Of a stretch of 64,000 bases of DNA, positions 35,400-61,748 are shown in pieces. The position numbers and the translations under genes are program-made. Each line of letters opens with the position of its first letter. Position 1 is the first letter of the stretch. The DNA is from Perkinsus chesapeaki ATCC PRA-425 (Eukaryota > Protista > Perkinsozoa), in NCBI GenBank assembly GCA_013115145.1, contig JAAPAO010000023.1:1-64000 (forward strand). Direction: 5' to 3'. Below the pieces are notes generated by a model. It did no database searches and was not told the origin of the DNA. It worked only from the letters and a program-made list of their open reading frames with translations.

Positions 35400-36900
35400 G
35401 CCATCTATATGATGATTCTGTCTGTGAACTGCACTCAGGATTCTCCAAGTGCTCAGCTGCGTTCCCTACAAGGTTGTGATCCACGCGACCCTAAGGCATG
35501 CCCGAATAGGCAGTGCGTTTGTTCTCGCATTGGATGCTGGTGCGAGTGACTCGAAGCCCCCCTTTCTAACCTCTGCCGCGGCTTTTTCTGTGGCTGGAGT
35601 TTCTGTGTTGCTGGTGCCAACACTGAGGAGTATGCCCCTTAGAGCAAGAAGTTCAACCAGCTTCTGGCTACTATGGCAGGACGACTCAATTGCCGGCTTG
35701 CCTGTCTAATATCTGTTGGGTCACTTGAAAGGACTTATCTCCCTTACTTTACATTAAAATTTTACATTGGTGTTTTGTTAGTCAATGTGCGTCTGGCCCA
35801 GGATCTTCTACGATCCTGTAAACCCGGGAAATGGCCCATGAGTCTTAGACATCTCCACACAGACCAGTGAGGTGACTTGAGAAAGTTCAACCACAGCTAA
35901 GAATGCCAGGCGATGGCAAGTCCGATCGTCCCGACTCCATGGGCCCTCTGTCCAGGCTCGACCAGCCTATAAAAGGGACTCCGGGGGAAGACAGGATTCT
36001 GATAGGACTTGTGTAAGAGCCAAATCCAATCGTTTGCTCTGTGGTGAGCAGGGTCAGCTATGTACGAGTGCTAATATACAGGAAGGTAAGAGTTTCACCC
36101 TACTCAATTCCAAGCCAGCCGGCGTGGCTGACCGCACGGAATCCCTTTTAACCTTTGATCCCGCGCTTACTAACCGAAGTAAGCGCGGAGGTTGCCCATC
36201 ATAGTAGAGCTGATTGTGTTGCTTTCTGCACCGCGTGGGTTCTTCCGTCATTCTGGTCCAGTATAACCCGTCTATGGACGCAAGCCTTATTTTGTTAGTC
36301 AATTTGTCCGGAGCAAATATACCGTCTAGAAGGAGCTTATGGCAGGCATGCTATTTCTATCAGGACTGACGCGCAGTCGGATCCATAGAGGATGAGAGAA
36401 TAAAAAGTCACTACTCCGTTGTCACCGAGATGTTGTTAGTGGTTCAGAGCTGAAAAAGCTGGTCTATGATCTCATCTACAGAAATGGGTCATCTGGAATG
36501 TCACACTTTGCACCTTTCTAGATGTTGTAGGAGTTACAACCCAGTATCCCTTTGCTCCATTGAGTTGAGAAAGTGAGTACATAGGGAGGGTTACTGACCT
36601 CTTACATATAAGAGGCCTCCGGGTTTTGGGAACCCCGTTTCCGGACGGCTTGGCGCTATAAGTTAAGACCCTTATCTTGCTGATAAGTTCTCTCATGCAG
36701 CTATTACACAGCGCTTTTCAGCGTTTGTAAACTGTGGCGCCAAGATACATATCAATGACGGAGCCTTCGCCGAAGCAAGCATCTGAGCTACATTGCTCAT
36801 GTGCACACTTTCAGCGTTGCTCGACACACAGTTGAGCATTTCATACACGCCGGCAAACGAAGAGGTTCTGAAACTTTTCGATGGGGTCATCCAAGGAGAC
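35400..36900 (-). mobile_element. possible decayed transposable-element/pseudogene remnants
   Basis: Stop-interrupted protein-like frames (WIWLLHKSY..LWLNF..RLMGHFPGL; SSQKLVELLALRGI) with no clear exon pattern. Only a vague integrase-like resemblance. Confidence 0.2.
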
Positions 36901-36935
36901 CATGGCCTTGCCATACACTGAGAAGAGGAGGCCAT

Positions 36936-37108
36936 AGCTCGACCGACTGATGACTCGACGATTGAACCGGAGATGGTACGACTTTGCTGCTCCAGCTGAG
37001 CCACATAGCTCTCCGCAGCCGCCTTGCTCACTCCTAGCATACCGTAGGTATTGAGGAGATCCTCGAAGCTGATGACGTGAGCAATCCGGAATCCTGCCAA
37101 AACGAACA
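36936..37108 (-). pseudogene. 173-bp fragment homologous to 39787-39960 of the MidA-like gene
   Basis: Encodes RIAHVISFEDLLNTYGMLGVSKAAAESYVAQLEQQSRTISGSIVESSVGRA versus ..LLDTYG..TISCSIVESSVGRA in the full gene. Homology stops abruptly on both sides. Confidence 0.9.
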
Positions 37109-37125
37109 TACTTGACATAATCTAC

Positions 37126-38136: not shown

Positions 38137-40887
38137 CTACCACTGATCATGCATCATCCATGCGAACGGCGGCTCTTCCGCTTTACGGCGGGCCAAACAT
38201 TGAAAGGGTTCAAAGCTACTGCTGTTGCCTATGATACCAATGGTCTCCAAACTTCTGCGCAGAACAGTCGCAACGCGTTGTTCACCCCAGATATCATTCC
38301 ATTTTAAGAGATGATCGCTGTTCTTGGTGCCGAACTTTACAAAGTCTATCAACTGTACACTAAGCTGCGCGTTCTCGTAGCCTCTGGCATACTCCCGAGC
38401 AGTAGCTTCGTGATCATGCTCGAACAGTGTCAGTATACCCAGTCGGTCGACAACGTCTGCTTGAGGAACCTGAGTCCAGGAAGCGTCGGTACAGATTGTA
38501 GTATAGTAAACACGAGAAGAACTAAGACAAGATGGGGGAATAACTAATGAGTGAAAGGGAAGTAATAGGAAATAAATACAAGTGAAACGGAAGTAGTAGG
38601 AAATAAATACAAGCGAAGGGGAAGTAGTAGGAATTAAATACAAGTGGAACGGAAGTAGTAGGAATTAAATACAAGTGGAACGGAAGTAGTAGGAATTAAA
38701 TACAAGTGAAAGGGAAGTAATAGAACGGATTACTTCACTAATATCCACCCTCCAGCAGGGATCCTTTTCTTCGCTACTGAGATGCCAGCTTATCGCACCC
38801 TCTGTAACAACCAGCGCCAGTTCAGCTGGAGTGCCTCTGCTCTGTACTAGGACTTTAAAACCCGTCCACCGCTGTACCCCCTCGAGCTCGTCATGTCCAT
38901 ACCACGATCGCATATGTCTGGCTGCCGGATGGTCCAGTGACATGTGGTCGTGAATGGAGTACAGGCTCGGTAGAGGGACCCGTGCCGATGACGTTGGTGC
39001 GGGTGCGAGCTTCTCCAGAAGATTTTGCGGGCCGTAGAGTATCGTATTCCAGCCTAGCTCTTCGCCAGCCCGCGCCACATTGGTGAAGTCTACAAAGCTG
39101 GTGAGATCCACAAAGCCCGGGCATTTCATCCAATTCGCTTGGCAATCATCGGGGAGCCCAGCAGCAATGCTCGACGGTGGGATCGGGGGAACCGCGACAC
39201 CATCTTCGAATGGGCTCGAGGACACACTGTGAGCTAGAGGTTCGAAGGGTGCGCCATAGTCGATGGAGAGTATGAATCCTCGACCGCCCAGTATACAGTC
39301 GACAAGCTGTACGTATTCCTCTTCACCGTGGCGCACTGAGAAAGCCACCGATACGTGACCCATTTCACGGTAGCGTCTTGCGATAGTCATTATTGACTTC
39401 GCGTTACGCCGCATCCAAGGAGCGAACTGCCGACAAGTGTCGGGACTAAGGGCTACGCTTAAACGCCTTGTCGTCATGAGATGAACAAGTTGTATCTCGG
39501 CAGCCTCGTGGTCTCGCATCAGATGTCTAAGCTCCCTGTATACATGTTTGCCGATGAGTATAGGGCGGGGGCCTTTAGCGATGAGTAACTTATGCTCTTC
39601 TTCAACGAGCATCATGAGGCGGTTCTGAAGGTTGATGTCGTTGCGGAGCCGGATACGCATATTGTGGGCAGCGTGAGGTAGCTGGAGATCTGTGTGGTCT
39701 ATCAGACGTGATAGAGCAAGCACGACGGCGATGCAGTCTTGCTTAGCATCCTCGTTGCACTTCGTTTTATTCAGAGCCTCCATCGCAGCTCGACCGACTG
39801 ATGACTCGACGATTGAACAGGAGATGGTGCGACTTTGCTGCTCCAGCTGAGCCACATAGCTCTCGGCGGCCGCCTTACTAACGCCTAGCATACCGTAGGT
39901 ATCAAGGAGATCCTCGAAGCTAATGACGTGAGCAATCCGTACTTCTTGCCAAGACGAACAGGCTGTTACATTGGTGGCAAAGACAGACAAGCGAAGTTTA
40001 GCCGGTGCAAATGCATCAAGCAGCTCATTGCTAAGTGCCACTCCAGCGCCGAACCATTCATGACGGAGTTGTTGACGTACTCGAGGGCATGTGGACTCGG
40101 CTGATTGAGCATCGGCTTCAACAACATTAAGGCCGCGCTTTCGCTGCCTCGCAGCCAGTGCTGGCGACCGTTCAACTATCACATACTGGCTTGCCTTGGC
40201 CCATCGAGAGGCAAGACCTTTAGTATCAAACGGGGGGTGTGCGAGGCACTCAAGGATATCGGAACCCAGCTGACCGCTGCCGGCACCGAACTCAACTATC
40301 GGAAAATAATCGGGCATGCCAGACACCATCCACATTATGAAGAGCTTTCGGCAGATAACGAAAGCGAAATGTGGCGATAGTGCCATGGGGTAGGTGGTGA
40401 AGTGGGAGAACTCCTCCGTGGTGGCACCATTGAGATCGATCTTGGCTTGTGATATGACTCTTCCTCTCGAGTAGTATCCAAAGTCAGGACCGTACTGCGA
40501 GTCAGTGTAAAACTCAGATAGGCTGTAGATCTCGTCCATAGGTATTGGTAAGAACATCGCCTCGTACCAAGATAGAGCTCCCCGATTCATCTCGCAGCAA
40601 CTTTCTGCTGTGAAAAGCTCGCCATCCCAGCACACCGGGTTCCCTTGGGGACCATGAAGTGTTGAGTTACAGCACGTACTGTAGCTGTAGCCGGACGACC
40701 AGCACTCGGCGTTGGGGCAGCAGTCGTCGTAGTTGATACCACCACTCCAGCATTCTGGCCGCTCAGCAACATCAGCTTTACAGCAATACTGAGGTGTGAA
40801 GCCACCAACCCAGCACTCCATAGCTGATATGTCCGGACCCAGGGGTTCAACGACAGTTACGAGGCCAGCGAGAAGGTAGCGCTTCAT
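38137..40887 (-). CDS. MidA/NDUFAF7-family SAM-dependent methyltransferase with signal-peptide-like N-terminus and four CW-x8/9-CC repeats
   Basis: Probable start MKRYLLAGLVTVV at 40887. Motifs FGYY, FTT, IVEFGAGSGQL, YVIVERSPAL, SNELLDAF, SIDYG and PGFVDLTSFVDF. One intron (~38470-38735) contains a minisatellite. Confidence 0.8.
38549..38725. repeat. 31-bp minisatellite, about 5.6 copies, intronic
   Basis: Unit aagtgraacggaagtagtaggaawtaaatac. Confidence 0.9.
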
Positions 40888-40909
40888 TGGGCAACAATGC
40901 TCGCCGACT

Positions 40910-43481
40910 TCAAAAGTTAATTGACAACTCGAGGGTGAATGGGGTAACTCTGAAACCGCACTCGACAGGATTCCATGGCTTTTGCAACACTTTCCGAAGC
41001 ACACGTAGAATCGACATGTCTGTCGTACAATAAAAAATATGCAACTTGAACCCGGGCACCGAAACCAGGAGCCTGAGACAGTCATCCGAAAGCCGCAAGA
41101 CCTGCGAGCGTACAGCAAGAGCTCTACAGCAGCCAAGCTCCACAACCGAGTAGCCAAGCTTGTGGGTGAGCAGTTCATCGAAAGGATCAAAGTCGAAGGA
41201 GCTGACTTCATCTCCAGAACTATCGCACCTGATGAAGGAGATGAGATGAGTCGAGGGGTGTACTGACAATCTTAGAGTTGAGGGATCGACAAAGAGGAAT
41301 CTTGCACCACCCTCGAGCTCCTTTGCGATGAGCGGCACCTGACGCACAGGTTGTTGAACTCATAAAGGCTTATACATGTTTAAGGAGCAGGGCATGTGTA
41401 GTGTTGTCAGTTTGTTACGTCGATATCATCAATTGCAACATTATAATAATGTTACGTACTATTCAAAGAATAATCGTAACTGACACTTGCAGCGCAGCAT
41501 TGTTGTAGACGTAGTCATCCTATTGTCCAATTCCAAGCCGTGCTTTAACATACAGCTTCAGACACTATTCGATCGACCTCTTCTAGAGTCCTCTTAGATA
41601 TCTGCGATACGACTGTCATCGCCTCGGTTGTCTCCAAGAGGACCTGCCCTTTGCAATATTAAAAGTGACAGCTGCTCTATTCACCGTAATGAGCTGCCCC
41701 TCCAGATAGCCTCGGTGCTTCATCACCTCATCACCGAACATTTTCAGGAAGAGCCTTGTGCAAGCTTCGGGCCTAGCCTGGACGTGAACGGATTTGATGA
41801 GGCTCATGCACGCTGATTGACTGGCAGCCTCCAAGCACGAACGAAAGCCCTGCAGCTTTTTATTCGGAAACTTCTTGTGAATCATGGTTCGGTTCAACGC
41901 TCTTCTCGCTGTCATATTTCCACTTAAAACAGAGCCACCATCGAATCGCCTCGTCTATATCGGACATGTCATCAAGCCCGACCTTAAAGCCACACAGTAT
42001 GATGGAGAATCTCGCATATCTGACCTTGACGCATGCATCCCATATAGCGATCAGGTCATCAGTAGACATCATCGACCGTCGTTTGGTATTGGCCAGCGCC
42101 CACTGGGCCATTCGTTCCAAGTGGGGCTTCTCAAGATGGCGACCATGCCGCTTAGCTATAGCACCGCAATCGAGGCTCCGAGGGAGATCTGACAAGGGGA
42201 GGACCAGGCGGCTTCAAACGCAATCTGAGACCTGCACTCGTTAGTCAATGCTAGTAATCTTCAAAGGCGACCGACTCATCAACGTGACAAGGTTCCGACC
42301 GAAACCTTTCTCGCCTGAGTGGACCGACGGCCCACAGAACTTACCTCCCTGCCAGATCTTGATCCTCTCAAGCAGTGATTGCTCGGCTCTCCGTTGCTGG
42401 TTCCGGAATTCTTCCGGGGGCTCCTCGACTGCGGTCATCGTTTCTGCTACTCTCAGTAACGATGGCAGCGGCAAAGACTCGCAGAGGGACGTTTGGTGGC
42501 TCTTCAGTATCTGACACGGCAGCCTCAAGCACCAACGCAGGATGCCGTCTACACTATCGAGCATCAGCAAAAGGTCTGCATTGTCAACCTGTTTCTGCCA
42601 CTCCTGTGAGCGACTCTCCGCCAACACAGTAGCGATCTGGGCGGCCTGGAAGGGATCGGACCACGGCTCGGTCGGCGCGGGTGTACTTGAATGTAGGACA
42701 TGGTTTGTACGTGGGATATTGTAGAAATCAGCAAAGACGACCAATCGCTGTAGGAGAGACCAGCAACGTTGATCAGCAGTGACCACGCGACAACCTGAGG
42801 AAAGCTGTCAGCTTATCGGAAGATATGCTCGTGAGGGCTCGAGCTCAGAATTGGGCAAGACTCCTACAGGGCGTTGTAGATGCCACCACGAGAAAATGAG
42901 AGGATCTCAAGGCCGAACCGAGGTCGCCAAAAAGGGGATACTTCCGCACCGATTGTTGAGAGCTAACATCTACCCTTACCAAATCAGCCGAGCTCATGTC
43001 CTTCGCGCGCCGTATAATTTTGCGACAGCTTTTGATCGCTGATGGATGATCGAGACCGAAAACGTCCATAGCGAGTCTCGCCTCGTCCATCAGAACACCA
43101 GTGCTAACGGCGCTCTGAGGAAGGATTAAGCGAACGCTGACGGGTGGCCCCTACTTCATCCCTGCTTTCATTCAGCCATTCAATTAGGGCCGTTCGAAGG
43201 CTACTGTCTGTTACCTCTGAAGAAGCCATCAGGCGCGCTACCTACTAAATTCCTTTTTATCAGCTAAAAGATGTATTTACCTCGAGGGCTTCTACCAGGC
43301 GAATTCCTGCTCGGTGACGAACAAGCTCAAGTGTGGCGTCACTCACTTCCAGCCACCGTAGCGGCGGACTTCCAGGGGACCGTGATAGTTCACGAGCCAC
43401 TTTGAGGAGCTGCCGGGCCGAACGGTGCAGCGACAATTTGGTCGATCCGGCGGGAATAGACAGGCAAGTGTGCGAGTTCAT
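40910..43481 (-). CDS. multi-exon hypothetical helical protein, possibly with a degenerate C-terminal RAP-like domain
   Basis: Open exons from MNSHTCLSIP.. through QRLVVFADFY, LLMLDSVDGILRWCL and DDLIAIWDACVK to VPLIAKELEGGARFLFVD...LLTHKLGYSVVEL. The RAP resemblance is weak. Confidence 0.5.
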
Positions 43482-61085: not shown

Positions 61086-61529
61086 TCAATCTTTCTTATG
61101 CAGATATTTTCTGCCCAAGTAGATCGCGCCAACAACAACCGCCGTAGCCATCAGCCCAACAGTAAGCACTCTCTCATAGTCAATCGATGAGGAACTGTTA
61201 TCCTCCTCCTTCTCGCCCACCAATTCCGTGTCCTCCTTCGTGCTTGCATTATCTTCCGTCTCCGTCTCCTCCTCAACAACTTCGGCCTTCTCCTCCTTGT
61301 TCTTTTTACTGCTGCGCTTCTTACCAGATTTCTTACCTAAAGTCCCCCGAGTCAATTAACTTCAGCCTCCCCTTATATTACCGCTAGTCGCCTGTGAAGG
61401 CGCCGACTCCTCGGTGGCCTTCTCAGCTTGACGACTCTCCAATTTTTTCTGAAGTCTAGCTCTGGTAGCCTCAGCTCGCCCGTCCGAAGGAGCCTGCATA
61501 CCACTCGCCGCTGCGGTTTGTTCTTGCAT
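61086..61529 (-). CDS. small tail-anchored membrane protein (2 exons)
   Basis: MQEQTAAASG..ATRARLQKKLESRQ, intron, K/E-rich linker, then a single C-terminal TM (VLTVGLMATAVVVGAIYLG) and the basic tail RKYLHKKD*. Confidence 0.6.
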
Positions 61530-61650: not shown

Positions 61651-61748
61651 NNNNNNNNNNNNNNNNNNNNNNNNNNNNNNNNNNNNNNNNNNNNNNNNNN
61701 NNNNNNNNNNNNNNNNNNNNNNNNNNNNNNNNNNNNNNNNNNNNNNNN
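61651..61748. other. assembly gap (N run)
   Basis: Run of N directly adjacent to a tandem repeat. Confidence 1.

Follow-up and report, generated by a model that had tools for sequence, protein, structure and literature searches.

The proteins NDUFAF7 (human) and MidA (Dictyostelium; structures 5ztz and 5zu0) are known to us only as mitochondrial assembly factors of complex I, and MidA is counted among the type II protein arginine methyltransferases (PRMTs). The bacterial COG1565/DUF185 proteins, such as those from Burkholderia (4f3n, 4g67) and Rhodopseudomonas (1zkd), are compact and cytoplasmic and have neither a leader nor a cysteine module, insertion or extension. Another gene of this type was studied in a stretch of 64,000 nucleotides from Perkinsus chesapeaki ATCC PRA-425 (assembly GCA_013115145.1, contig JAAPAO010000023.1, positions 1 to 64,000; below, the window). 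It lies on the minus strand, to which all gene coordinates given below refer, and has two exons (40887..38734 and 38469..38137) with 828 codons. In our opinion, with a probability of about 0.65, its product is a soluble S-adenosylmethionine (SAM)-dependent methyltransferase of the MidA/COG1565 fold, which a cleavable signal peptide would send into the secretory pathway; its place of work would be the lumen of the endoplasmic reticulum (ER) or Golgi, a secretory organelle or the cell exterior, and its substrate would differ from the complex I subunit NDUFS2.

The window protein shares with NDUFAF7/MidA the PF02636 profile, the fold and the SAM-binding and signature motifs, but the identity is about 20% and the length is 828 residues versus about 400–480. 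A signal-like leader stands in place of the matrix presequence and four cysteine repeats are present, as well as a helical insertion of about 170–230 residues, a C-terminal extension of about 110 residues and eight extra conserved cysteines. Motifs are also shared with the bacterial proteins; among proteins of solved structure, 4f3n comes closest in sequence, with a profile E of 3e-10 and, when the structures are aligned, 24% identity at Z 21. PRMT5 and PRMT7 resemble the protein weakly in the Rossmann core: at Foldseek E values of 4e-3 to 1e-2, only the generic class I core is aligned (about 200–250 columns, template modelling (TM) score 0.1–0.2), which does not mean membership in that family.

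The two exons were searched separately. In the search with Pfam hidden Markov models, PF02636 (Methyltransf_28) was matched in two stretches (71.4 bits, where 23.3 is the cut-off; E 1.1e-19), and the genome-level match at this locus reached 51.9 bits; the NCBIfam search gave no match. The set of MidA/NDUFAF7 motifs described in the earlier note was found again in full on the minus strand: FYTD..GYYS (residues 126–142), EFGAGSG (199–205), SNELLDAFAP (286–295), IDYG (542–545) and CPGFVDLTSFVDFT (589–602). The first three of them, along with FTTYPMALSP and VERSP, belong to the N-terminal, SAM-binding lobe (40000..40545; Pfam profile positions 2–112; alignment to 4f3n and 5ztz), and the last two to the C-terminal lobe (38752..39306), recognised by alignment to MidA structures. 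When aligned to 4f3n and 5ztz, the GxGxG, ERS, NELLDAFP, DYG and PGxxDLT motifs are intact, and SAM-binding motif I, the acidic residue after strand 2, NELLDAFP, DYG and PGxxDLT are invariant across 57 sequences from two subfamilies.

The full-length fold was predicted on the ortholog from Perkinsus olseni (FOZ60_009862, here P0001; 826 residues), which is 83% identical. The AlphaFold2 model, based on an alignment of 57 sequences, has a predicted local distance difference test (pLDDT) value of 88.8 and a predicted TM score of 0.90, and a Foldseek search with it gave six significant matches, all to MidA/COG1565 structures. In agreement with the assignment of the earlier note, VIA-align placed the model on Dictyostelium MidA 5zu0 with Z 22.0 (349 residues aligned, root-mean-square deviation 3.4), followed by 4f3n (Z 21.2) and 1zkd (Z 20.7), against 15.8 for the best methyltransferase outside the MidA family. 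The matches to MidA/COG1565 structures extend over 328–350 residues. The MidA fold corresponds to model residues 118–715, of which about 350 align and about 250 are additions, mostly between NELLDAFP and IDYG. By profile, motifs and predicted fold, the gene product is a member of the MidA family.

The largest addition is the family-specific insertion (39307..39999, approximately residues 297–527), which is mostly helical and contains four conserved cysteines and an NVT sequon. The earlier note had estimated it at roughly 200 residues, and this estimate holds: the interval from NELLDAF to IDYG comprises 233 residues versus 63 in Burkholderia 4f3n, a net gain of about 170. In the model of the P. 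olseni ortholog its helices run from H327 to H440. Part of the gene is duplicated about 1 kb downstream, where a 174-bp fragment at 36936-37108, within the minus-strand open reading frame (ORF) 36693..37118, is 91% identical to 39787-39960 at the start of the insertion region. Near its ortholog, P. olseni has a partial copy of the N-terminal lobe (L010 12245-12579; 68% to window 40577-40269).

The supposed substrate of such an enzyme appears to be missing from this organism. Across the 3544 contigs (41.7 Mb) of the assembly, a profile search found a single PF02636 locus, and NDUFS2 (PF00346), NDUFS7 (PF01058) and NDUFV1 (PF01512) had no match in it, an absence that is not absolute in so fragmented an assembly; cytochrome c1, taken as a positive control, was found by the identical method with E 8e-56. 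Complex I was lost before the divergence of apicomplexans and dinoflagellates (PMC8554336), and the statement of the earlier note that the lineage lacks this complex is in accord with both results. Since the canonical substrate NDUFS2 was not found in the genome and the locus is the sole one of its family there, a new substrate, also proposed earlier, would be required, and this claim is well supported by the genomic comparison. The arginine methyltransferase activity is suggested solely by family membership; the acceptor could be an arginine of a protein, as homology suggests, or else a glycan or another lumenal molecule, as the associated enzymes suggest.

The N-terminus (40822..40887, residues 1–22) is signal-like and consists of MKR, a hydrophobic core of 10 residues and EPLGPDISA; its best Kyte–Doolittle 9-mer, at residues 5–13, scores 2.74. 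The earlier note had rightly pointed to its hydrophobicity, and the start codon, an ATG at 40887, is supported by comparison with P. olseni, the ortholog of which has a stop 4 codons upstream of its own ATG. The DNA similarity between the two species at the 5′ side of the gene begins only at 40842. The long open frame that contains exon 1 (41211..38665, 848 residues) would allow a 108-codon upstream extension (41211..40888), which was rejected as a coding part of the gene because of the P. olseni stop, the onset of similarity at 40842 and its overlap with a conserved neighbour gene in another frame. This neighbour is the minus-strand ORF 40910..41347, without a Pfam match, which ends 22 nucleotides before the methyltransferase ATG; its homolog in P. 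olseni is situated about 2.8 kb upstream. The 22-nucleotide spacing would fit formation of the 5′ end by spliced-leader trans-splicing, for which it is a candidate.

Nearly every complete protein of the two subfamilies, among more than 50 relatives, has a hydrophobic leader within its first approximately 25 residues; in subfamily 2 the leader is followed by an 'AWNS' motif and directly by the catalytic domain. A mitochondrial matrix presequence is not seen here, as MKR and the hydrophobic core are followed by acidic residues and cysteine repeats. Eight cysteine columns outside the repeats are conserved in nearly all of the 57 aligned members, and four of these belong to the insertion (window residues 310, 357, 385 and 485), two precede the PGxxD motif, one is late in exon 1 and one is in exon 2. 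The NVT sequon stands at residue 306, and an N-x-T is common to 24 of the 42 members of subfamily 1. The conserved cysteines and the sequon are marks of a protein that would fold in an oxidising and glycosylating compartment. Entry of the enzyme into the secretory pathway thus has good comparative backing, and the leader would function as a signal peptide.

The leader is followed by the cysteine module (40594..40815), which is composed of four CW-x8-9-CC repeats of Dinozoa type with 12 cysteines, probably paired in disulfide style. The repeats had already been noticed, and in 33 orthologs their 12 cysteines and 4 tryptophans are invariant or nearly so. Each repeat unit has three cysteines, and between units there is often a ..G(P)xGN..CW spacer. 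The repeats are not a chance occurrence: when the window was searched in all six frames for CW-x6-11-CC, they made up four of only five matches; the fifth, CWADGYGGCC (CW-x6-CC; 61132-61161, minus strand), is isolated and probably due to chance, and an assembly gap of 98 N (61651-61748) is located nearby. A Pfam search of the whole 848-residue open frame gave no match to the module at E<=1, and matches of the repeats to psalmotoxin (E 0.13) were taken as chance.

The repeats are modelled as helices of 4–5 residues between loops rich in glycine and proline. When modelled as a stand-alone domain the module has a pLDDT of 68, versus 82–96 within the full-length model, where these values suggest that it may be packed on the enzyme. 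The ESM Atlas feature search with the N-terminal region gave no usable match, the Atlas shape search with the stand-alone fold returned unrelated HhH-GPD entries (TM 0.40), and VIA-align against 48,161 chains found nothing with Z>=2. Taking into account the mediocre model of a small disulfide-type domain, these results are no proof of a new fold.

A profile of the module built from the orthologs was compared with 1.84 billion representative proteins and recovered 334 clusters at E<=1e-3, of which 65 were at E<=1e-10. Most of these clusters are not MidA proteins. The module mostly stands close to the N-terminus, and all of the named examples come from dinoflagellates. Among 83 module-bearing non-MidA proteins scanned with Pfam, those annotated have mostly glycan-processing or methyltransferase domains: GT90 in four, DUF3431 and a 2OG-Fe(II) oxygenase in three each, TylF O-methyltransferase, FkbM methyltransferase and Acyl_transf_3 in two each, and GH47, GT92, GT2, Nucleotid_trans, Methyltransf_22, Methyltransf_24, aldo/keto reductase, GMC oxidoreductase, ARS2 and ShK in one each. 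The module is also carried by P0068 from Fugacium kawagutii (1153 residues), which consists largely of long tandem arrays of it (11 matched stretches, E 4e-66), and therefore it exists as a stand-alone repeat protein as well.

Within P. chesapeaki itself, the module directly follows a signal-like leader in a GT47 exostosin (Pfam E 5e-31) and in a DUF273-like transferase. Several other multi-exon genes have it after a leader, two with PAN-like exons upstream and the rest without a Pfam domain; these genes with CW-x8-CC units, the exostosin and the transferase included, are on contigs C2904, C1154, C2862, C2891, C2893, C1047, C3275 and C442. In the genome-wide search for the CW-x8-CC pattern most hits were low-complexity noise, with control counts equally high, and only in-frame matches read by eye were counted. 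From its partner domains, the module belongs to enzymes of the secretory pathway, and several of its bearers being other SAM-dependent methyltransferases implies that SAM is available in that compartment. The four-repeat block would be a module specific to the lineage, which follows the signal peptide of glycosyltransferases, a glycosidase, acyltransferases and O-methyltransferases of sugar type, and its most likely role is in folding, retention or binding of a substrate (glycan or wall) there. Plant pectin methyltransferases are lumenal SAM-dependent enzymes of the Golgi, usually with a type II membrane anchor. Their families are unrelated to the present one, and the place and logic proposed here, a SAM-using enzyme beside glycosyltransferases, may be analogous.

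The same partners bear on the idea that the enzyme is still mitochondrial, either as a matrix enzyme that acts on another protein or after import into the intermembrane space through Cx9C-like motifs. The characterised members, human NDUFAF7 and Dictyostelium MidA, are mitochondrial (PMC3829151), and three of the repeats do have a C-x9-C spacing. Nevertheless, the N-terminus is hydrophobic rather than an amphipathic, arginine-rich presequence, and the repeats are modelled as helices of 4–5 residues with glycine and proline instead of the paired long helices of twin Cx9C (CHCH) proteins. The co-occurrence of the module with GT47, GT90, GT92, GH47 and Acyl_transf_3, which are enzymes of the secretory pathway, also speaks for another address, and the main text of the paper on the Perkinsus mitochondrial complexome mentions no methyltransferase, MidA or NDUFAF7. 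A mitochondrial location is, in our opinion, most unlikely.

A signal peptide also stands at the N-terminus of plastid proteins in dinoflagellates and perkinsids, and the leader might be considered the first part of a bipartite signal and transit peptide that directs the enzyme to a relict plastid. Linkers of 10–40 residues after the leader in dinoflagellate orthologs would agree with this, but they are acidic and not rich in serine and threonine and basic, and in the window gene and its P. olseni ortholog the leader and the repeats are almost adjacent, which leaves no room for a transit peptide. A module with 12 cysteines and glycan-enzyme partners is unfit for a stromal enzyme, and such targeting is hardly credible.

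Several points weigh against a catalytically active enzyme of the secretory pathway. The core of the leader is short (10 residues), with proline at −3 of one candidate cleavage site, and the putative signal peptide is based on hydrophobicity and comparison. The 5′ end is placed by comparison as well, since two RNA runs labelled with this species did not contain the stretch (share 0.00). Only a minority of the 83 scanned module-bearing proteins have any Pfam domain, and in a separate check eight of nine such proteins had none. As to the final compartment, neither an ER-retention signal nor a membrane anchor was seen in the protein, so that the ER/Golgi lumen, a secretory organelle and the cell exterior are all candidates. 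The location proposed in the earlier note, secretory or extracellular, is accordingly narrowed: the leaders, module partners, cysteines and sequon favour entry into the secretory pathway, but an extracellular place is indistinguishable from residence in the lumen.

One more point concerns catalysis. The family has TYPMALSP where 4f3n has TAP-ELSP, and replacement of this glutamate could change the handling of cofactor or substrate. The T(A/S)PE(L/I)S signature is therefore absent; its defining value is founded on the one aligned structure, 4f3n, and on NDUFAF7, and the difference is read as divergence and not as exclusion from the family. If the TAPE-type motif without its glutamate were taken as a sign of a dead enzyme, the protein could be a MidA-fold scaffold of the secretory pathway, or a binding protein there, in which the approximately 250 unaligned residues would serve binding and not catalysis. 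Against this, the SAM-binding and signature motifs remain invariant in all 57 sequences of the two old subfamilies, which argues for selection on catalysis, and we consider such a pseudoenzyme unlikely.

A word-index search recovered 67 related proteins, nearly all with PF02636, and all named relatives are from P. olseni or from dinoflagellates: Symbiodinium, Durusdinium, Effrenium, Gymnodinium smaydae, Polykrikos, Biecheleria, Yihiella and Amoebophrya. In databases they are labelled 'hypothetical', 'midA' or, automatically, 'type II protein arginine methyltransferase'. The tree separates two subfamilies with 100% support in the Shimodaira–Hasegawa-like approximate likelihood ratio test (SH-aLRT), and the window gene is inside subfamily 1 with P. 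olseni and dinoflagellates (orthologs in Symbiodinium, Durusdinium, Effrenium, Gymnodinium and Polykrikos), the members of which are about 40% identical over 95% of the length and have the four repeats, the insertion and the C-terminal extension. The homologs with repeats joined to a MidA domain, for which the earlier note had proposed a search in Perkinsus and dinoflagellates, thus do exist. Subfamily 2, found in Biecheleria, Yihiella, Polykrikos, Symbiodinium and Amoebophrya, is a paralog without repeats (27–31% identity), in which the insertion and extension are kept. The family would thus be confined, among named sequences, to Perkinsus and dinoflagellates, all its members having the insertion, the helical C-terminal extension and the eight extra cysteines. 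No description of the family or of the cysteine module was found in the literature searched or in Pfam, and literature searches on NDUFAF7/MidA in dinoflagellates, on PF02636/DUF185 and on the Perkinsus secretome gave nothing relevant. The enzyme may be a retargeted NDUFAF7 or a separate acquisition of a COG1565 protein.

This distribution also bears on the suggestion of the earlier note that the protein is a host-directed effector, exported by Perkinsus to methylate arginines on proteins of the mollusc host. Perkinsus is a parasite, the closest ortholog is that of P. olseni, and a signal-like leader without a retention signal or anchor fits export. The identical architecture, retained at about 40% identity, occurs in free-living, phototrophic, symbiotic and heterotrophic dinoflagellates (Gymnodinium, Polykrikos, Symbiodiniaceae), and so we deal with an old enzyme of Dinozoa and not with an invention of a parasite. 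Moreover, the gene is single-copy, syntenic with P. olseni and 83% identical to its ortholog, without the expansion or fast evolution typical of effectors, and the module partners are housekeeping glycan enzymes. The suggestion was not supported by this comparison, and an effector role is very unlikely.

Exon 1 (38734..40887, 718 codons) encodes the leader, the cysteine module and the MidA fold with the insertion and was established from the open frame, PF02636 and 83% identity to residues 4–723 of P. olseni FOZ60_009862; the gene is syntenic between P. chesapeaki and P. olseni. The intron (38470..38733, 264 nucleotides), read from the sequence, has GT..AG ends. Most of this only intron is filled by a tandem repeat (38550-38723; period 31 nucleotides, 5.6 copies, 90% matches), which, when read in frame, yields spurious small ORFs on both strands. 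Exon 2 (38137..38469, 110 codons and TAG) encodes the conserved helical C-terminal extension (helices H725-H825 in the model of the P. olseni ortholog) and is 68% identical to residues 724–820 of FOZ60_009862. Dinoflagellate transcripts, when aligned, run contiguously across the junction of the two exons. Judged by these comparisons, the extra C-terminal exon that the earlier note had reported is real.

A wider proposal, which we make tentatively and regard as doubtful, is that perkinsids and dinoflagellates carry out protein arginine methylation in the secretory pathway or at the cell surface by means of a MidA-fold enzyme that was freed, or separately acquired, when complex I was lost. In the same proposal, the N-terminal CW-CC module would be a domain specific to Dinozoa and not described before, by which glycosyltransferases, glycosidases and several methyltransferases are brought together on one shared substrate in the lumen or the wall.

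As a whole, these data suggest that the MidA fold persists in a lineage without complex I and was probably rebuilt there for the secretory pathway, which would be an example of a family of organelle assembly factors that acquired both another location and another substrate. They point to methylation chemistry in the ER/Golgi lumen or in the cell wall of dinoflagellates and Perkinsus, a group of ecological and economic importance that includes coral symbionts, bloom formers and oyster parasites. The CW-x8-CC module could be of use in delimiting the glycan machinery of the dinoflagellate secretory pathway.

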